Assembly: GCF_000143415.4 (NCBI RefSeq)
Contig: NW_003314286.1
Span: 1,797,718-1,861,717, forward strand
From: Selaginella moellendorffii
Taxonomy: Eukaryota > Plantae > Lycopodiophyta
Reading direction: 5' to 3'
Length of the DNA: 64,000 nucleotides
Made by a program: the position numbers and the translations under genes. Below are positions 44,708 to 55,438 of this stretch, piece by piece. The notes below the pieces were generated by a model. That model did not search any database. It was not told the origin of the DNA and was given only the letters and a program-made list of their open reading frames with translations. The stretch's first letter is position 1, and each line of letters starts with the position of its first letter.

Positions 44708-46529
44708 ATGGGAGGCGATTTCTCCAAGCCGGATCCTCACTACGATAGCTACGCCGCGTCGCCGTCTCCGCGCGTCCAGCCCACCTCTCCGCCGAAAGCT
44801 AAGATACACCGCCGCTTCTCCACGAAGTACTCGCACATCGCCGATAATTTCGCTAGCATTGAGGAGGTATGATCGCCAACGATCTCGTGGCAATTTTGCC
44901 TCACTGGAAGTGGAAATTTTTGTTTTGGTCCTTCTCTCCATCCAGGTACAGCAAGAATTGCGAAGAACAGGCCTCGAGTCCTCCAATTTGATCGTTGGCA
45001 TCGATTTCACCAAGAGCAACGAGTGGACTGGAAGGATCACTCATCAAGGGAAGAGTTTACACGCAATCGGCGATGGTAGCGTGCCAAATCCTTACGAGCA
45101 AGCGATTTCTATCATCGGGAAAACCCTCTCCGACTTTGATGACGACAACTTGATTCCTTGCTTTGGCTTTGGAGATGGTACGAATGCTTTGTTTTTCTTT
45201 CACGAAAGCTCTCTACTTTGGACCGACTCGGCTCTCTCATTTTCCAGCATCCACGCACGACAATTACGTCTTTAGCTTCTACTCGGATCACCGCCCCTGC
45301 CATGGTTTCGAGGAAGCTCTTGCAAGGTACCGTGCCATCGCTCCTCACGTCCGGCTCGCTGGTATGTTTCCACGAAGAAGAAGATCTTTCGAGTGAGTTG
45401 ACATGGTTTGGCAATTTTCTCGCAGGACCGACTTCGTTTGCTCCCATAATCGAGGCTGCAGTAAGAATAGTGGAACAAAGCGGTGGTCAGTATCATGTTC
45501 TCGTGATCATTGCCGATGGCCAAGTAAGTGACTGCTTGTTTTTTTGTTTCCTAGGATCAAATGTGGGGCCGTAACTTATACTAGCTCGTGTTTCTGCTTT
45601 TCCACAGGTAACAAGAAGCGTAGATACGGAGGTCGGGCAATTAAGTCCTCAAGAGAAGAGCACGATTGACGCGATTGTGACTGCGAGGTACGCTTTGTTT
45701 TCTACTATTTTTCCTACGCCTATGCCTTCCACTCTTTTGCAGCAACTATGCGCTGTCGATCGTTCTTGTTGGAGTTGGCGATGGTCCTTGGGATATGATG
45801 AAAGAGTTTGACGACAACATCCCCAGACGAGCATTCGATAACTTCCAGGTACCGAAACATTGACGTCAATTTGTCATGCTAAACTGTGCTCGTTTTGACA
45901 GTTCGTTAACTTCTCCCAAATAATGTCGAAGAAGCTGCCTCTCCATAAGAAAGAAGCATTGTTCGCATTATCAGCACTCATGGAAATCCCAGCTCAGTAC
46001 AAAGCAACGGTAGAACTTGAAATCTTGGGGTAAGATTGCTTCTTTAAAAGGATTTCCGTTCTTATTCGTCTTTTAACTTTAGGCGAAGATCTGGAACTGC
46101 GACTAGTTCTCTTCCTTTGCCACCTCCTGTTCAAGTATTGCAAGCGGACTCTCAGTTTCACGTTGAGCCATCGTCGTCTGGTTACTATCCTCCAGCTGAA
46201 AACTACTACACTCCACCTGGATTTTCACCTACGGCACCGAGGGGCGTGGACCTTCCAGAAAGCCAGGTACGTTTCACTGTTCCGGACAAACTCTTCAGAT
46301 GAACGCTCTTGGTTTCCAGGTGTGCCCGATCTGTCTCACGGAGAGAAAGGACTTGGCTTTTGGCTGCGGACACCAGGTATGCAAACACCATTTCTTTGGT
46401 CTTTGGAAACTTGTCAAACGTGTTGTTTCCATTATGTCGTCATGGCAGACATGCAGGGAGTGTGGTGCCAGTTTGACGAACTGTCCGATTTGCAGACAGG
46501 AGATTTCGACTCGAATTCGGCTGTACTGA
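44708..46529 (+). CDS. RGLG: RGLG-type E3 ubiquitin ligase (N-myristoylated, copine/vWA + RING), multi-exon
   Basis: [97 protein letters not shown]...[15 protein letters not shown]. Confidence 0.95.
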
Positions 46530-49041
46530 AAGACTGGAGCTGGGATTCGCGCGGCCGTTCGTGTACAGGCAAAGGATTTGTTTTTCGAGGGAGGTTCGTG
46601 GTTTGCTACAGTTTTGTCGCAAGGAATCGGCGGCCAAGAGCTTTGACACTGGAATGATACCGCTGTAATTCTTTCTCGCGACTCTCAGGGAGGGAATCTT
46701 CTCCCCGCAAATCGTTTCTTCCTTTTCTTTTGGTTTCTTTTCCTTCCTTTGTTTTCAAAGGGGTCGTACTTTGTGATGTTGACGCAGACTTTCGTATGAT
46801 TCGAAACCATTTTTTCTCTTTTTTGCCACCCCTCTCTGTGTAGATTTTTTTTTTCATACTCCCCAGAGCCGGGACGTGCCCGGACCATCCATCAACCTTG
46901 GCTCTCTAACATTGTCTTCGAATTTATCAAATAGAAACATGGTTAGATTATCCGTCACCTAACAGTGAGTGTTGAATGTTAGGTGGGTGTGGAGTGAAGC
47001 GAATTGGTAGCTCAACCGAGAGTTGCCTATGTCATCACGATTGGTGACCCTTAACTACTAGCTATAATGCGAGCGAGTGCGCAAACTTTTTCTAAGATGG
47101 AGATGTTTAGCCTGTTAATCCTGAATGAGGGTCGTGAGTGAGATTTTTTTATATCATGTAGGGTTCTTAGCGTTCCGCGGGGGTCGTGTTGGTCGGTCTA
47201 TGAGCAAAGCCTCACGTAACCTAGTAGGATTTCAATTATCTTTTTCTTTTTTGTATTTTTGCAACGAGCTTGACTTAAACGAGACTGGGATGTTTGAGCT
47301 AGAAACTCGTATTAATATGCGTATTTAGAGTCAATCGTGTCCCAGATGTGTATAGTAGTCTCGTCTACTCTCAAAGATCCCTTGCATTGTGCACAGGGGC
47401 ATGAGTGGAACGGACACAAGGGCCGAGATCCAGTCGGGCCAAGGAAAAGGAAAAAAAGAAAGAGAGAAAAATGTGAATGCTGGAGTTTAGACTTCCACGG
47501 TGATCCTGTGACAAGGTTTTCCACTCGGTGACTTGGCAACCAAGTCAATGAGGCTCATCAAGGGAGGGCGGTGGCAGCATATTACCGACACACAACCACG
47601 GAAAAGGATAGATCTAAACCGAATCCCAGGGATTCCTCTTAGAGATGCTGGCGTCTTTTCGCATGCGGTGACGAGAGGTTTTAGATCGCGGCGGGCACTT
47701 GCGACTTTGTGGACTGGATCGGCCATAAAAATTTGGGGTGAAACTTGTGGATGGTCATCGTCAAGGACACGTAGAGAGACACAAGCCCCGGGCCAGCAAC
47801 ACAGTGGTCAGGCTGTGCGGCCAAAGGGAAGCGTTGCTTGCATCCCCCACGTACGTAAACAAAGAAAAAAGAGAAAGGGAGGATGAGAGGGAAGGCGAGA
47901 GAGAGAGAGAGAGAGAGAGAAAATGGACCCCTCCTTTTGGAAGGAGGGGCCAGGGGGAGATGGGAGATACAACCACAAGGGTCACAACTAGTGAATTGTT
48001 TGTTTTCATGGGTGGCCGCACCAATGGTTTTTGGCCGGATGTGATCGTTGGCAATGCCAAAGGTGCCGTGTTGGAGGCAAACTGGCCTAGTAGCAAGGCC
48101 CAGCCACAACGTTTATCTCAAGGTTTGCCGATTTTAATCCGTGGACCCTTGCATCAAAAGCCACTATATTATACTACGCAAGACATACATGCATCTATTT
48201 TAAGGGCCGGGGATGTCTATGCCCGGGACACATGCCATGTGAGCCGGTAACGTAACTATACGTAACCAGCTGTGTGTGGGAAACCACCGGTATGCCATGC
48301 TTGCCAAAACTTAACAGCAAGCAAACAAGGTAGGGTAAGTGGGGAAGGGACGGCTTGAATGCAGGCTGACTGTCCCCACCCACGCAGCTGCAAACCTGAG
48401 GTACCCAGTTTCTTCTTTTTTATTTTTAATGCCTTTTTTTACTCATTTTTCTTTTCCTTTTCTGTTGCTATTTACCATACCATGGTGGTAAGGCATGTGT
48501 TTGATCATGGTGAGCAGGCAATGTACTTGTGAGAGTGGTGTAGGTGCAGAAATGAACAAACAAGGCACACACACAAGTTCTGCACACACACACAAATCTT
48601 AAGAGGGGGTTTGCAGCACACACACTGGAGCAGCAGCAGACACCAGCAGCACACAGCAAGGATGGAGATGAGGTGAATTGAATGTAACACACACCACACC
48701 ACACCACACCACACCACACACCACACACCACACCACACACAAACCTCTCTCCTTTTTTTTTCTCTCCCCCTGTCTTTCTAAAAGTGGGAGCAGCAACTTA
48801 TCCCAAGAGCCTACTACACCTCCCCCCTCTCTCATTTTCTTCCCATTCATTTGATCTCCTAGTTTAATAGGAGGTAAAAAACTTTTGTGGGAGCTTGGGG
48901 GGTTGGGGGTTTGGTGAATTGGTGGTGTTGGGAGCAGGAGAGAGCAAGCACCAGGTAGCACAGATCTGATCCATTCTGTAGCTTAATTGATCCAAAGGCT
49001 CCCCTGCTACAGTGTGCTGTGCAACCAAGAATTCAGGGGAG

Positions 49042-49075
<34 letters not shown>

Positions 49076-49516
49076 CAACAAGAACAAGAGTAGGGGAGAG
49101 AAAAAAAAAAGAGATCTTTTAGACACCAAGTGAAAAGCAGAGCACCCCAAAACAAGGGAAGTGGGAAAAGGGAGAAAAGAGAAGCTGAGATATGGAAGAA
49201 GAGGGAACAAGAAGCAGGAACTGGCTATGGCTGTGGAGGGGAATATTCGCGTCTCCCATCGTGGAGGAGGGAGAATGGAGGGCAAGGGAGGGGTAAGAGG
49301 AACCCAGGATTGGACTGGAGTTGGGCTAGGAGAGCTAGTTCTAGTTTGGTCTTCTCTTTTTTTTCCTGGATTCCCCTCTCTCTTCTCTCTCTCTCTCTCT
49401 CTCTCTCTCCCTCGCGTGGTGTGTGTGCGCATTGATTCAGGTGTAGGACTTTCTCGCTGATTGATGGTCCATGGAAGATCAAGCGCTACCGTGTTGATCG
49501 GGGTGGGAGGATCCCC

Positions 49517-51937
49517 ATGGCAGCATCCAGTGATTCGGAGAGTAAGAAGAGCAGGAAGGAGGAATTGGGGGGCGGTGGGAGCAGCAAGGAGGAGAAATCC
49601 GATACCGCGGCGGGCGGGTCAGATCAGGCCCAGCAGCAGCAGCCGCAGCAGCAGCAGCTGGCGGTGGTGCCATCGCCGGCCGGCGGCGGCGGCACGGCCA
49701 ATGGCGCGGGCGGTACCGCCGGCGGTACGCAGCCGGCGGCAGCATCCTCCGCCGCGGCGGCTGCCAAGGAGCGCGACTACATCTGGACCGAGGACGCTGT
49801 GCACGTCCTCCTGGATCACTTCCTGGAGAAGTACATGAGCTACGAGAAGGGGATGATCCGCAACGCCGACTGGGTGGAGATCGCGCAGCGCGTCAACCAG
49901 CAGCTGGAGGGGAACAAGCCCGTCAAAACGCCCGAGCAGTGCAAGAACAAGGTGGACAATCTCAAGAAGCAGTACCGCAAGGAGCGGCGGCGCGGATCCC
50001 TTGGCCCCTCCAGCACCAATTGGGCATTCTTCTCGCGGATGCACGACATCTTCGAGAGCGATTACAAGAAAACAGGGGGTGGTGGCGGCGGTGGAGGTGG
50101 CGGCGGCGGAGGAGGAGGAGACCGAGATCCTGGCGGCGCGAGCGAGGACGTACCACCGCAAAACAATTCCAATCCCGCCCCCGCCGCCGCCGCGGCTGCC
50201 AACAACATCGAGGACGCCCACCACCACCACCGCTTGCGATCCGCGGTGGTGCCGGATCACTACCTGGCGTCGCGCGAGTTCATCCGCAAGCAGCAGGAGG
50301 AGCTGATGCAGTACAACAAGCGGCCATCGCGGCGGAGCGAGACGCCGCCACCGGGGTCTGGCGGCGCGCCGATCTCCCAGCAGCACCACCCACACCACCA
50401 CCACCACCACCCCATGATGCTACTGCCCGAGTCCTCACACATGGCCTTCCCGCCGCACGCATCCAATCACCACCACCGCGAGTCCGGCAGCACGCCCGCG
50501 CGGAAAAAGGCCAAGTCGGACCGGCACGAGCAGCACGGCGTCCCGCACGGCATGACGCACGGCATACCGCAGCGACACCACGACCAGCGGCACTTGCAGC
50601 CGGCGGGGCCGCCGCAGCACCACGCGGAGGGATCGGGGCCGCCGTCGTCGGACTCGGGCGGCGGGGGTGGTGGCGGTGGAGTGGCTGCCGTGGAGGGATC
50701 CACCAAGCACGAGCGGAAGCTCCACCGGCACCAGCTCGCGGCGCTGCGGCGCGACTTCATGGAGGGATTCACGGGCTTCGCGGAGGTGATGCTCAAGATC
50801 GAGGTGGCCAAGATGGAGATGCAGCGGGATCTGGAGCGGCAGCGGGCGGAGATGGAGCTCCACCGCACGCAGATGATGCTGAGCAACCAGCTCCAGCTCG
50901 CAAAGTACCTCAAGGCCAGCCCGATACCGCACGGCATGCCGCCCGACGGCGGCGGGGCGGGCCCCTTCTGGCCAAACTTCGGCTTCACCGACGCGAATGC
51001 CAATACCGCCGGCGGTACCGGCGGCACGCCGCGGCTCCAGCTCGCCATCCCGATCTTCCCGGACTTTACCGCGCTGGATGCCGTGGGGCCTTACGAGGTA
51101 CTGCATTTGCTCCCCAACGTGGAGGTGCTGTTTGTGAGCCACCAGCCTGGGCTGTACGCCGCCGGCATGGGAATGCTCACGTTGCAAGCCACCGCGTCAT
51201 TCGACCAAGTGACGCGGCCGCAAATCCTCGTCGTGCCTGGCGGTATGGGCACCCGGAGGCTGCTCCAAGACCGAGTTATACTCGACTGGATCCGAAAGGT
51301 ACGTTTTCTTCTTTAATGGCTTGAGTGGAGACAACAAGTTTTTGTTGTTTGCTACTGATCAACTTGGCTGCTTCTGTCCTCGTTCCACTCGATGCGTACT
51401 AAAGTTTCGATTTTTTCGTTGCTTTTGGTGGTGGTTCTTCCAGGTTCACGAGCATACCCTCTACACTGCTTCCGTTTGCACTGGATCGCTGCTGCTCGGT
51501 GCTGCCGGATTGCTAAAAGGGATCGAGGCAACCACGCATTGGAACTCGCATGAGCTGCTAGCGGAATTTGGAGCCAAGCCAGTATCCTCGAGGATAGTCC
51601 GCCAGGTTGGTTTCAATCACCCGCGCTCCTGTATAACTCTTTGTTCTTCCAGGGGAAGATCATCACTGCTGCTGGAGTGTCCGCTGGGATCGACATGGCT
51701 CTTCAGCTGGCCGCCCTTCTAACGGACGAGGCCACCGCCAAGACGCTCCAACTTTTCATCGAGTATGATCCTCAGCCTCCGTTTGACAGCGGCTCGGTGG
51801 CCAAGGCCGGGCCCGAGGTGGTGAGCAGGGCCAAAGAACTGTCATCCAAGCGACTCCAAGCCGTGGCTGGTGCCAGTGCTGCTGCTGCCGCTGCCGCCGC
51901 CGCCGCTGCTGCTGCTACTTCCAGAGCTCCAGCGTGA
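49517..51937 (+). CDS. Trihelix (SIP1/ASIL-type Myb/SANT-like) transcription factor fused to a C-terminal InhA-type DJ-1/PfpI (isocyanide-hydratase-like) domain; exons 49517-51298, 51444-51605, 51653-51937 (742 aa)
   Basis: WTEDAVHVLLD...DWVEIA...KTPEQCKNKVDNLKKQYRKE...WAFFSRMHDI plus coiled coil FAEVMLKIEVAKMEMQRDLERQRAEMEL, then FPDFTALDAVGPYEVL...VVPGG...SVCTGSLLLGAAGLLKG..ATTHW...AGVSAGIDMAL...EYDPQPPFDSG. Confidence 0.9.
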
Positions 51938-52511
51938 AGCAGAGAGAAGAAAAGTCTACTTGTTCTACGATGCTGCTGCTGCTGTTGTATGTACCAAAAG
52001 ACGATAGAGGAGAGTGAGGGAGGGAGACGAAGAGCTCTAGAATCGAGACGAGGAACGAGCAGCGAACGACTGGAATATCCTTCTGCTTTGGTCGGGGAGA
52101 GAGATGATCCAGTTTTCCAAGAACACAGCCGGAGAAAGAGAGGCTCCACAGCTCGAGAGTTTCCATTGATCATTGGTACGCTGCTGGGGCTCTCGCTCTC
52201 TTTTCATCTCTTTCTTTGCTCCATCTCTTTTTCTTCCCGCGGGACTAACAGTTCTTCTCTGCTAGCTCTCTCAGCTCTCTAAATTTTTTGTTCGTTTTCT
52301 TTTTTTCTTGGGCTCTCGTTCATACCGATTTGTGTACCGCTGCTGCTGCTGATTGATTGACATCACTGTGCGTTTCTTCGTTTTTTTCCTTATATAAATT
52401 CTTGGTAGCCTCTGAGACGAATAAAGAAGAAAAGAACTTCCTTCCTCTGTGGCCGAATTTTCCCGCTAAAATTTGAAAGTTTAAATCTCTGTAGGGTTAG
52501 GGCACGAGGAG

Positions 52512-55438
52512 ATGGCGACGGGCGATGGCGATGGCGATGGCGGTGGAAGTGACAATGCGAACGAGGTGGTGTAGTTTTTTCTTAGACACCTCGGACTGGG
52601 CGACGAGCTGGGAGGTGATGGCTCCTCCGCAAAGCAGTGTGACAGCGGGTGATTTCTTGCCAAGGACAGGGCTTTGATTTCTCTTGCACCAAGACGGCAA
52701 TGGTCACGAGAAGCTTGTGAGAGATCTCCTCTGGAGGGCAAGAAAGCGTAGCAAGCATGCAGGGAGCTAAGCCGGGGAGCCGCAAGGAGGTGGAAAGGGA
52801 GAGGCGGAAAAGCTTGGCGTTGGATAGAAGGAAGACCGCGGCCATTAATCAGGGAAGCACAAGTGGAGCCGTAAAGAATTTCGGTCACAGCAGTACGCTC
52901 ACGCCACGGACTCTGGTGAAGCGATCCCACCACAAGGAGCACGTCTTGAATGTGAGCGGCCTTCTTTTTCTTCCGCGAAAGCTACCACAGTATACTTTTC
53001 TTCCATCGCTCGCAGCTTGTGGTGGTGGTAATGGCGGTTGCTTTTCTAGATCCTTGCCGAGAAGAACTTGAGGATCGGAGCCTTCGGGAAGGTTGAGACG
53101 CAGGAGGATCAGCCGGCATGGAAAGCTCGGCCCAACGCACAGCAAAGCCCGCAAGTTCTAAACTTGAAGAAGAGGATGGAGCAGAGGAAGAGGCATATGA
53201 CGCAGTACACGAAGAACAACACATTTGTGGACATCTTCAAGGTGGTATCTTTTCTAGTTTTTCTTTCGATTTTTTTTTTGCTTTTGTTATGTCGTGTTTA
53301 GATTCCATGCCTTCTCTAATCAAAACTCTTACCGTGCAGGACACTGAGGACCGCCGAACACCGCCAGCGACGGCAGGAATTGTTGTTGCCGGTACAATCG
53401 AGCTGGTTGCTCGTCAGGTTATTGAGAAGCACGCAGAGATCCAACACAGGTAAGCAAGCGCACACCTAAACTTCCAGAGTTAGATTGATATGCCTCGCTG
53501 AGAGTTATCCAACAGCGATGCGTGCTTGAGAGAAAGCGACCAAAACACATTTTTCTTCGTTTTTTTTTTCTTTTTCTTGTATTTTTTATTTCTCTCTTTT
53601 TACGCTTGTGTGCGCAGTGGGTGAATGCAACTTGCATTGATGACTATCATCGTACTTGAGTGTGCAGAGAAAAGAAAGGAGTCTGGGCCCAATTAGGAAA
53701 GCCTTATGCGTGCTTTGGCTTACCAGCTTCGGCCATACCGAAGGACTGTCCAATGCCAGCCGGGGCTCCACCTGGTGAAATGTATCCTTTCTTTGGACAC
53801 GCTCAGAAGCCGCAACTGTTAGAAGTCGGACAAGACGTTACAAAGTTTAGAAGAAAGCGTGCTCAACCTGTCACACGGGAAAGCTTAAACATGCAGGGCA
53901 TGCTGATAAAGCTGGGCCTGCAAGGTAGGACTACTGATACTACTCACCTTTGTCACCCGTTTGCCTGTGATCTGATCCTACAAATTCTTTTCCTGAGTGA
54001 TTTGCATGTTTTGTACAGACTAATGGACGGCGTTTGTTTTCATCAGCGTGTTCTCATATTTTCTGTAGGCAGTACAAAATTCCCAAGGGCACCTCTTGTC
54101 GAGGCAAATGACTTGAAGACGGCTGTGAAGTACGGTGGTGCTTGCTACACACTTGGGAGGTCCGTGCCTTCTTCAAAGCGTTCCAATTTTGACGGTATGT
54201 ACTTCAGTGCCTGGCCTGTTTCTTTTTTCAGAACTTCTTCTTTGCAGGAAGAAGCAGGCTTTCCTTTGATCTAACTGAGCTGTTTGAAAGGTAAGATAAT
54301 AGTATACATCTGGATTGATGTGCTGTGGCTCCTAATTCTCAGTTGGCGGAGCATATCTGGTGGATCACAGGTATGGCCCTTTCATAGTTTTTTACATGAC
54401 TTGTAGCTGACTCCGACAAGGTCTATAGAGTGTTTTGGATATGGATTTTAGTAACGTGCCGCCGCCACGAATGCCTGGTGTGAGCTTGCCGCAGCTGGCG
54501 AAGTCACCCGCACCTCAACTTGAGCGTCCAAGCACCAGTGCTGGAGAACAGTCTTCGCATAGTCTGGTATTTTATTGTATGCTAAAGATTCCTGCGTCAT
54601 AGATGTTTTGTCTTCCCTGCGCAGCTATATGGCTGGAAGAAAGGTTTTGCTGATACGAGGAAAAGGCTGCAAGACAAGCTTACACAGCGGCTAATGAATA
54701 GAACAGTTCGGCGAAGGCATTTTAGATCGTGTTCCCCTTCTACAGCAGAGGTATCCTGTTTGTTTTATTGACAATGCCGAAGTAGTTTCTCCTTTTTGAA
54801 GATTTCCATCAAGCTTTTGGAACACTTAGAGGAACGGGGTGGTGGTTCTAAAACTCCACTACAGACAGGACACATCTGGTCAGCATCACTCTCAGAGAGA
54901 TCTGATTCCTGACAAATCAGGTGGCAATGCAGGAAGGGTGTCGAAGATAAACAGAGAGAGATGGACGCGTCGGCTGTAGATCCGGAAGTGGAAGCTATCA
55001 GCAAGTTCTACGAGCGTGTGTGCATGTTTGTCAACAACCAGAAGATGGATGATCCACTTATGGACATGCTTGTCAGCCATCTTAAAGAGTAAGTCGGCAT
55101 CGCTGTTTGATTGGGATTATTTTTCTTGTCCCTGTGTTTTATTCTAGACTGTTGGAAGAAGGCTACAAGCTGCAAAAGAATCTACTCATAGCTCTCTGCG
55201 AACGCTTGTCGAAGTTACAAGGTACTTTGTGCTTGGTCGGGTTTAACTTCTGTTCTTTTTCTTTCCAGATCACGTCGAGGCTACCGGGAGAATGACATGC
55301 TTGATGCCTATTCTCAACTTCATCTGCAAGGAGCTTCACCTCACGTCCGTGGAATTCAACTCCATTCTTGGCAGATTTGGCCTGGATTGGTACAACACTT
55401 TCACCAGGCCATCTCTCTCGGGGACACCAGCTCCATAG
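52512..55438 (+). CDS. Uncharacterised multi-exon gene (boundaries approximate)
   Basis: Chain of phase-compatible GT-AG exons (e.g. ILAEKNLRIG...TFVDIFK|DTEDRRTPP...EIQHR|EKKGVWAQLGKPY...; VEAISKFYERVCMFVNNQ...LKE|LLEEGYKL...|DHVE...PAP*). Telobox-like TAGGGTTAGGG just before the ATG at 52512. No family recognised. Confidence 0.55.

Follow-up and report, generated by a model that had tools for sequence, protein, structure and literature searches.

A trihelix transcription factor and an isocyanide hydratase-type domain joined in one expressed gene of Selaginella moellendorffii

In Selaginella moellendorffii a trihelix transcription factor and an isocyanide hydratase (ICH)-type DJ-1 domain are encoded by one expressed gene with a chimeric product. 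The gene lies at 49517-51937 (+) of the window, i.e. the whole stretch of 64,000 nucleotides which was analysed, and all positions given here are those of the window. Transcription factors with a small-molecule-reactive enzyme domain of their own are familiar from bacteria, which supply the usual examples, and plants are not known for them. The gene presents a verified, expressed case in which a plant-specific DNA-binding family is combined with an enzyme family apparently taken from soil actinobacteria.

One transcribed gene

Spliced translation of 49517-51937 (+) yielded a single gene with three exons, a coding sequence of 2229 nt and a product of 742 amino acids. The list of open reading frames has the frame 49517-51316 open without interruption. 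Exon 1 (49517-51298, +; aa 1-594) codes for the trihelix factor, a linker and the start of the ICH-type domain (its first 88 residues), as seen in the ORF list, the spliced translation and the RNA contigs. The latter were assembled from runs of four studies and cover exon 1 wholly. This bears out the original prediction that one uninterrupted exon carries sequence of both halves. Intron 1 (51299-51443, +; 145 nt) is followed by exon 2 (51444-51605, +; aa 595-648) with the nucleophile elbow, Cys606 (51477-51479) and Thr607, intron 2 (51606-51652, +; 47 nt) and the coding part of exon 3 (51653-51937, +; aa 649-742 and stop). The translation of exon 3 contains the motifs AGVSAGID and EYDPQPPF as well as the C-terminal ICH helix, and has a tail of poly-Ala. 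The splice joints 51298/51444 and 51605/51653 are both GT-AG and both phase 0, and both were present as RNA joints in four of four runs; the two in-phase introns had been proposed from the letters of the DNA.

The 5' untranslated region (49122-49516, +) is represented in four runs by RNA contigs at 49122-49369 and from 49428 onward. The break between them coincides with a simple repeat, a (CT)n tract at 49370-49427, and the true 5' end possibly lies farther upstream. The 3' untranslated region (51938-52469, +) is defined by the contig from run X3, which extends to 52469; in the other runs it reaches 52372-52384. An RNA joint 49734->50393, seen in all runs, was rejected as a low-complexity mis-join, since one of its sides has only 21 nt and it lacks GT-AG.

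Single RNA contigs span the trihelix part together with the enzyme part, namely 49428-52469 in X3 and 49679-51865 in X2, and continuous contigs cross the junction linker in four runs. This confirmed that the fusion is not a merger of two gene models, as had been claimed, but one transcribed open reading frame. An assembly chimera at the junction was contradicted by these contigs. The fusion's own protein was missing from the searched protein collections, as it might be if the gene were an assembly or annotation artefact or a bacterial contamination; against this stand the contigs across the junction, the spliceosomal introns confirmed by RNA in four studies and intron positions in common with a moss gene. 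The chance of an artefact is negligible.

Alternatively, the two halves might mainly be made as separate products, by an internal promoter, by processing or by an early transcript end, and the fused mRNA would be a minor read-through. Internal starts or ends are invisible in the RNA data, which are assembled contigs of flat mean depth, and an extra internal start that gives a separate enzyme is possible. An in-frame methionine, Met472, is located 35 residues upstream of the ICH-type domain. However, no stop codon separates the halves, and the ancestral start methionine of the enzyme has been lost, with RLQLAIPIF in place of M..KI.VA.PIF. In addition, contigs run unbroken through the junction in two studies and two other runs cross it too, and the word share of 0.7-0.78 across 14 RNA runs is consistent with the fully spliced form. 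We consider separate main products improbable.

The two halves of the protein

Pfam places a trihelix (Myb/SANT-like, PF13837) DNA-binding domain at aa 90-178 (49784-50050, +), practically where it had been predicted (about 49781-50053). The match has an E-value of 6.3e-16 and 59 bits versus a cut-off of 27, and covers profile positions 4-89 of 89. An AlphaFold2 model of the exon 1 product has helices at residues 92-108, 116-129, 139-158 and 169-185. Block means of pLDDT are mostly 85-94 up to about residue 160 and lower in the fourth helix. The conserved aromatics W90 and W119 and a WAFF motif are present, and the domain is 40-46% identical to angiosperm trihelix domains. A long conserved, coiled-coil-like helix of the SIP1 type follows at aa 397-467 (50705-50917, +). 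It was modelled as one helix of 71 residues with pLDDT 82-90 and encloses the coiled coil expected at about 50740-50912. Residues 409-465 share 45% identity with the C-terminal helix of P0001, a stand-alone trihelix protein of 382 aa. Between the folded parts of the exon 1 product, in His/Gln/Gly-rich regions, disorder is predicted. The translation also contains the basic patches KKSRK, RKERRR and RKKAK, which are only suggestive of nuclear localisation or DNA binding. Judged by domain match, predicted fold and helix, the first approximately 470 residues make up a complete SIP1-type trihelix factor. The junction linker (aa 468-506; 50918-51034, +) is rich in Gly, Pro, Ala and Thr, contains neither stop nor intron and is predicted to be disordered, with pLDDT <50 at residues 472-501.

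The ICH/InhA-type DJ-1 domain is complete and comprises aa 507 to about 720. In the AlphaFold2 model, which covers its exon 1 part, the predicted beta/alpha elements start at aa 507, i.e. at nt 51035, and the expected onset was about 51030. The N-terminal third (aa 507-594; 51035-51298, +) includes the Asp521 codon (51077-51079). Its best match in the PDB was isocyanide hydratase 3non, chain residues 5-91, with an E-value of 3.3e-12. The exon 2 and exon 3 pieces also matched Pseudomonas ICH best, at chain residues 98-145 (E 6e-16) and 147-229 of 231 (E 1.4e-13). Jointly the three pieces tile the Pseudomonas chain from 5 to 229 with about 47% identity, as counted from the printed alignments, and other families scored 1e-4 or worse against the same pieces. 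They also tile a moss homologue without gaps, the piece aa 507-594 being 61% identical. The C-terminal EYxPxPPF extension of the fusion, EYDPQPPFDSGS, aligned to EYAPAPPFNAGS, and the alignment extends as far as residue 229 of the 231 in the chain. PF01965 on exon 2 alone, one exon of the domain, scored 26.1 bits versus a cut-off of 26.6 (E 8.7e-6); in precomputed tables PF01965 is listed for the moss and Selaginella homologues. The moss orthologue matched ICH with an E-value of 1.7e-46, Arabidopsis DJ-1D with 1.7e-15 and human DJ-1 with about 1e-5. An identity as ordinary plant DJ-1 was ruled out, as the scores of the moss orthologue and of the fusion pieces favour ICH. The assignment to the ICH/InhA clade instead of the usual plant DJ-1 proteins is thus upheld.

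Asp521, Cys606 and Thr607 align with Asp17, Cys101 and Thr102 of ICH. D521 matches the LD of QQLDLTGP, C606 and T607 fall into the motif SVCTGSL, and an AGxxAGID motif is present. The catalytic set had been called intact, and its coordinates were exact: the Asp codon at 51077 is D521, the Cys codon at 51477 is C606, a threonine follows and the spacing is 85 aa. The C-terminal half is a complete and, judged by its intact catalytic residues, putatively active ICH-type domain.

In the ICH homodimer, modification of Cys101 sets off a helix shift that extends across the dimer. Since ICH-type proteins are dimers, the enzyme domain might have lost its chemistry and be retained purely for dimerisation or stability; trihelix factors of the SIP1 type already carry a dimerising helix. 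Conservation speaks against this reading. The columns of D521 and C606 are conserved at 97-99% among 142 family members, and the fusion has kept 38 of the 38 columns which are at least 85% conserved, both these residues included. The branch of the fusion's ICH half in the tree is not accelerated, but short (0.22 versus a median of 0.47). A pure dimerisation module is therefore highly improbable.

Origin of the enzyme half and distribution of the fusion

The stand-alone moss homologue has introns at both positions at which the fusion gene has them. A Selaginella paralogue has an intron at the position of intron 1 and none at that of intron 2. In the trees, the plant ICH-like sequences form one clade (support 99/94) nested among Actinomycetota. 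Its sister group (94/96) is an Acidimicrobiales clade within a bacterial radiation, and the nearest Atlas clusters are all bacterial. This suggests an old bacterial transfer of an ICH-type gene into plants and a later fusion. Because the moss shares the intron positions and Selaginella has stand-alone paralogues, the gene that was joined to the trihelix gene was probably an already domesticated plant gene. A recent horizontal transfer into Selaginella was ruled out by the intron positions common with the moss. The original prediction of a horizontally acquired enzyme grafted onto a plant factor was supported with regard to the bacterial origin; the transfer itself is old and not specific to the fusion gene. 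Possibly, an ICH-type gene passed from a soil actinobacterium into an early land-plant lineage, gained two introns there and was then duplicated. Later, in the Selaginella lineage, the stop codon of an intronless trihelix gene would have been lost, so that its frame continued into one of the ICH-type copies.

No fused protein was found elsewhere in protein, metagenome or literature searches. Among the best 150 matches of a profile search against 1.84 billion representatives, none had a C-terminal ICH domain in a protein of about 740 aa; the longer matches were bacterial tandem ICH-like duplicates or YHS fusions. A junction-peptide query of metagenomes identified no relative, and a protein search with aa 496-594 returned the moss protein as the sole match. 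The fusion's own protein was absent from the searched collection at 327-1040 aa, and so were the exact exon 1 and ORF sequences. The whole exon 1 protein as a query retrieved trihelix matches only and was swamped by low-complexity words. A query with the trihelix domain alone returned nothing from 16 candidates, which has no bearing on orthologues. Literature searches on trihelix plus DJ-1, plant isocyanide hydratase, Selaginella isonitrile hydratase and horizontal transfer of PfpI to land plants produced nothing relevant. The main text of a paper on plant DJ-1 evolution mentions neither Selaginella nor trihelix (PMC8170915). As anticipated, we could not find the trihelix-ICH architecture described; it is known so far from S. 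moellendorffii only. Because no fused orthologue was found in other organisms, the fusion may have arisen recently and be restricted to one lineage. If so, the intact catalytic residues may reflect too little time for decay.

Possible coupling and comparison with known systems

Are the two halves functionally coupled? Quite possibly the fused protein is a coupled sensor-regulator, a dimer on DNA with a reactive ICH site that signals to transcription, and this is the reading we tentatively prefer. The protein would dimerise via the long helix and the obligately dimeric ICH fold and bind DNA with its trihelix domain, and Cys606 of its ICH domain would still react with an isocyanide or a related electrophile. 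Occupancy or covalent modification of the Cys606 site may then shift the conformation or the dimer geometry, on the model of bacterial trigger enzymes and of the AraC-DJ-1 regulators. The altered geometry would change the activity of the factor and couple a small-molecule signal, plausibly microbial, to transcription. Precedents for such combinations are an ICH-like fold with an AraC HTH in the GlxA family and a trihelix domain with a UMP kinase in several angiosperms. As a counterpoint, domain order and DNA-binding fold differ from those of the bacterial DJ-1 regulators. Many microbial isocyanides are copper-binding metabolites. A more specific version, a eukaryotic trigger enzyme which detects microbial isocyanides or electrophiles via Cys606 and relays this through the dimer to trihelix-mediated transcription, is rather doubtful.

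The fusion may also be real and its halves uncoupled. The enzyme would then be a passenger on a trihelix factor, or a detoxifying ICH-type enzyme which is carried to the nucleus or chromatin and dimerised. The two complete, ancestral-looking modules and the disordered linker of about 40 residues suggest a read-through of two neighbouring genes, the lack of a fused orthologue in the searches points in the same direction, and the enzyme half evolves like stand-alone enzymes. On the other hand, coupling is usual among the enzyme-regulator fusions studied so far (PutA, BirA, AraC-DJ-1 regulators). Furthermore, seven of seven polymorphisms in the RNA contigs of the gene are synonymous and the whole open reading frame appears to be maintained; as the ICH part holds one of the seven, present-day constraint on this half is weakly shown. 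Uncoupled halves are possible.

If the coupled sensor-regulator is real, it would provide a simple route from a microbial metabolite, be it an isocyanide, an electrophile or an oxidant, to plant gene expression. With coupling via Cys606 it would be a one-polypeptide sensor-regulator of a kind undescribed in plants, and it might serve as a compact part for synthetic biology. Even if the halves are uncoupled, the ICH-type family in mosses and lycophytes bears marks of an ancient horizontal transfer, and two different enzyme domains have become attached to trihelix genes, a UMP kinase in angiosperms and ICH in the fusion gene. The fusion has so far been seen in a single species, which limits its practical weight.

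Pseudomonas ICH/InhA (PDB 3NON, 6NI5 and others), a member of the DJ-1/PfpI superfamily, resembles the enzyme half in the end-to-end alignment, the catalytic set, AGxxAGID and EYxPxPPF. In contrast, the predicted enzyme domain of the fusion is C-terminal in a eukaryotic protein of 742 aa, is interrupted by two spliceosomal introns at the gene level and is placed behind a DNA-binding factor. The AraC-family DJ-1-like regulators (GlxA family: FtrA, GbdR, CdhR) also have a DJ-1 fold and a DNA-binding domain in one polypeptide. Next to the stand-alone enzymes, they are structurally the closest family (TM 0.56 for the GlxA row and 0.87 with a bacterial ICH-like cluster as structural proxy). However, the order is reversed, with DJ-1 N-terminal in the regulators, and an AraC HTH is used there, a trihelix here. 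By Pfam an AraC HTH is absent from the fusion, and the DNA-binding domain is the N-terminal trihelix. GlxA-family regulators were the best NCBIfam matches of the moss homologue, but these were partial and far below the cut-off (67.9 versus 425). The domain belongs to the enzyme clade and not to the regulator clade (ICH 1e-46 over full length versus FtrA 8e-19 over a part). The resemblance to the GlxA-family regulators is one of function only.

The angiosperm trihelix plus UMP-kinase proteins (PF13837 and PF00696; At3g10030-type, SIP1 clade) similarly combine an N-terminal trihelix with a C-terminal enzyme-family domain. At3g10030 is listed among the SIP1-clade trihelix genes (PMC4783932). These proteins were the best trihelix-domain matches found, with 40-46% identity. 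Their enzyme domain has an amino-acid kinase fold and they occur in several angiosperm species, whereas the ICH fusion was found only in S. moellendorffii. Pfam detected no match to PF00696 in any exon of the fusion gene, and the trihelix domain alone is in common. The stand-alone plant ICH-like genes (Ceratodon purpureus M758_11G004800, S. moellendorffii SELMODRAFT_439354 and the environmental P0009) are of the same clade as the enzyme half, 51-70% identical and share intron positions, yet none has a trihelix part. P0009 begins directly at the enzyme domain, and its leader apparently is non-coding and trihelix-free. The stand-alone SIP1-type factors such as P0001 correspond to the other half in layout, with a DNA-binding domain (36% identity), a middle part that is disordered and a conserved long helix at the C-terminus (45% identity). 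They end about 40 residues past the helix, whereas the fusion runs on into the enzyme domain.

One transcript across the trihelix-enzyme junction

The ORF listing of the sequence contained an uninterrupted frame from 49517 to 51316. Removal of two phase 0 GT-AG introns at 51299-51443 (+, 145 nt) and 51606-51652 (+, 47 nt) left a CDS of 2229 nt, which translates into 742 amino acids and terminates at the stop codon 51935-51937 (+). Logan contigs of four RNA runs, one per study, were mapped to 49000-52600. The GT..AG joints of both introns were present in all four. Contigs X3-13 (2874 nt, spanning 49428-52469) and X2-9 (2098 nt, 49679-51865) each lead from the trihelix part across linker and junction and on through the spliced enzyme part, and 50900-51100 was also crossed by contigs in the remaining two runs. 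Because RNA contigs cross the junction and both intron joints, the fusion is neither a chimera of the assembly nor a merge of gene models; the original prediction had denied a merge and had proposed an RNA check of these stretches. The fused mRNA exists. Assembled contigs are blind to any additional internal start, and separate products arising from such a start are unlikely. In 14 RNA runs that carry the label of this organism, a share of 0.69-0.78 of the sampled words of 50700-51937 was present, which is consistent with exons without introns. The window pieces also tile P0008, a homologue from the moss Ceratodon purpureus, gap-free at both exon junctions, and this independently validated the splice model.

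All four runs further contained a contig with a 658-nt skip (49734->50393), anchored on one flank by just 21 nt and lacking GT-AG ends. Rather than an intron this is most likely a mis-join in GC-rich low-complexity sequence.

Seven single-base differences were observed between the window and the RNA contigs of the other runs (49522, 50332, 50350, 50575, 50879, 50902 and 51715). All were synonymous and only one is located in the enzyme part. The sole coding indel, an extra in-frame GGC at 50098 in three of the four runs, falls in a poly-Gly run at residues ~186-201, where the low-complexity linker is polymorphic in length. Because every substitution was silent and the indel in-frame, the ORF appears to be under present-day purifying selection.

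Architecture of the two halves

The N-terminal part behaved as a SIP1-type trihelix protein in the tests applied. Pfam reported PF13837 with 59 bits (cut-off 27) at residues 90-178, i.e. nt 49784-50050, where the domain had been placed from the sequence. AlphaFold2 of exon 1, run with a small alignment, predicted confident helices of the DNA-binding domain at 92-108, 116-129, 139-158 and 169-185, and a single 71-residue helix at 397-467 (nt 50705-50917, pLDDT 82-90) at the position of the anticipated coiled coil; residues 1-83, 187-244, 270-394 and 472-501 were of low confidence. In P0001, a stand-alone trihelix protein of 382 aa, the C-terminal helix shares 45% identity with the long helix, and the DNA-binding domain 36% with that of the window protein. 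The P0001 chain stops ~40 residues past its helix, whereas the window protein runs on into the isocyanide hydratase (ICH) domain. Based on the Pfam domain, the predicted helices and the P0001-like C-terminal helix, the first ~470 residues form a complete SIP1-type trihelix factor and not a fragment.

The top match of all three coding pieces of the enzyme half was Pseudomonas ICH. They tile residues 5-91, 98-145 and 147-229 of its 231-residue chain (E = 3e-12, 6e-16 and 1e-13) at ~47% identity, counted from the printed alignments. Arabidopsis DJ-1D matched a single piece, at best with 3e-4. P0008 (337 aa; 57-62% identical to the window pieces) scored 1.7e-46 against ICH, 1.7e-15 against AtDJ-1D and ~1e-5 against human DJ-1. 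With ICH far above AtDJ-1D, the match scores confirmed an ICH/InhA-type domain rather than a usual plant DJ-1. The domain starts near nt 51035. D521 (codon 51077), C606 (codon 51477) and the following T607 align with ICH D17, C101 and T102, thus the catalytic triplet is intact and the D521 to C606 spacing is 85 residues, all as originally read. The consensus residue is kept at 38 of 38 columns that are ≥85% conserved among 142 family members, and the tree shows a short terminal branch for the window protein (0.22 against a median of 0.47). End-to-end similarity and the catalytic residues place the C-terminal domain inside the ICH clade. Because of the tiling, the catalytic residues, the conserved columns and the short branch it looks like a working enzyme of this clade; a purely structural role of the domain is highly improbable.

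Ancestry of the enzyme domain and gene joining

The window domain, P0008, the stand-alone S. moellendorffii paralogue SELMODRAFT_439354 (P0013) and the environmental proteins P0009/P0159 formed one clade (UFBoot 99, SH-aLRT 94). It is sister (94/96) to a clade with Acidimicrobiales genomes, both within a radiation dominated by Actinomycetota (Solirubrobacterales, Conexibacter). The trees comprised 142 and 57 sequences in which fungi and algae were not sampled by name and taxonomy is missing for most representatives. In the ESM Atlas, all of the nearest clusters were bacterial. The predicted horizontal acquisition was supported insofar as the plant clade lies inside a bacterial radiation; however, it has to be qualified as an old event, since both introns recur in the moss gene with position and phase unchanged (one follows WIRK, the other RIVQD) and a stand-alone paralogue exists. 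The latter, from the GenBank assembly, is 51% identical and retains the first intron only. The closest sequence, P0009/P0159 (70% identity, stand-alone, 222-224 aa), has an intron-free ORF on environmental contigs of 1.4-2 kb with AT-rich flanks (L001-L005; JGI samples 3300056983-3300056995). Their leader contains no recognisable trihelix sequence; on two contigs a short ORF was called there. Because of flanks and leader the source looks eukaryotic, either mRNA or gene. The simplest reading would be a single ancient transfer that brought the gene from a soil actinobacterium into an early lineage of land plants, where it then gained introns and was duplicated.

The deposited 353-aa model of SELMODRAFT_439354 (L007, GL377571.1, 6001-6720) splices off just past EYDPQPPYDAG, and the genomic frame continues into an ICH-like C-terminal helix; a mis-splice probably accounts for its final ~140 residues. 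The stand-alone moss protein (L006, CM026444.1, 6001-7493) is extended N-terminally by ~67 aa of acidic, Lys-rich sequence, which includes the Cys/His cluster CTSMCHKHKC, and C-terminally by ~60 aa encoded past a further intron. Bacterial relatives (P0010, P0011, P0012, P0015, P0018 and Atlas clusters) include tandem duplicates of the ICH-like domain as well as fusions with YHS, heavy-metal-binding or AraC HTH domains. The metal-binding partners may link the family to copper-binding isocyanide metabolites.

In the fusion a disordered linker of ~40 residues connects a complete trihelix protein to a complete ICH domain, which begins where stand-alone proteins do (RLQLAIPIF versus MEKGKILQVAMPIF and MKPMGSKIQVAIPIF). 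The trihelix part is intronless and the enzyme part has retained its two ancestral introns. Together with the completeness of both halves this fits a loss of the stop codon and intergenic DNA between two adjacent genes. Third-position GC declines along 49517-51937, from 0.85-0.96 over the trihelix part to 0.79 where exon 1 encodes the enzyme and ~0.60 over exons 2 and 3. Either a 5'-to-3' gradient or the separate histories of the two halves could account for this. Upstream, ORF pieces at 44859-45574 (+) match the Copine domain (E = 4e-12 and 2e-11) and are probably exons of a copine/RGLG-like gene.

As had been surmised, the architecture appears undescribed: it was absent from the best 150 matches among 1.84 billion representatives, no second fusion was present in the metagenome contigs searched, and no account of a trihelix-ICH fusion was found in the literature searched. 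The window's own protein was missing from the protein collections searched. Lack of fused homologues in these collections, whose lycophyte coverage is uncertain, is weak evidence.

Possible coupling and known systems

The analysis establishes that one ORF is transcribed and that it encodes two complete domains with intact catalytic residues. Nuclear location, DNA binding and enzyme activity of the fusion protein, and any coupling of its halves, are inferred. Bacterial trigger enzymes and AraC-DJ-1 regulators serve as models for a tentative proposal, in which the enzyme domain might be coupled to transcription-factor activity. The long helix and the ICH-type fold are both expected to dimerise. 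In ICH, modification of Cys101 is passed on as a helix shift across the dimer. Similarly, a small molecule that reacts at, or occupies, Cys606 could alter the dimer, and the altered dimer could change the activity of the trihelix factor. The main rival accepts a real fusion with independent halves, the enzyme being a passenger or targeted to the nucleus; it is a serious possibility, if a somewhat doubtful one.

The window gene joins a DNA-binding factor to a small-molecule-reactive domain, and its occurrence, so far, in one species limits the weight of this finding. Bacterial GlxA/AraC-DJ-1 regulators differ in DNA-binding fold and have the opposite domain order. The best trihelix-domain matches (40-46% identity) were angiosperm proteins with PF13837 and PF00696 (P0002-P0007, from Mercurialis, Telopea, Eucalyptus and Logan assemblies), one of them named 'uridylate kinase PUMPKIN, chloroplastic' by NCBI. 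Presumably these trihelix-UMP-kinase proteins are of the At3g10030 type. PMC4783932 places At3g10030 among the SIP1-clade genes. The enzyme domain of the trihelix-UMP-kinase proteins is a different one. The window protein belongs neither to them nor to the bacterial regulators, and its likeness to both groups is in principle only. PF13837 with PF00696 is a second, conserved trihelix-enzyme architecture, so the joining of a trihelix factor to an enzyme has precedent.
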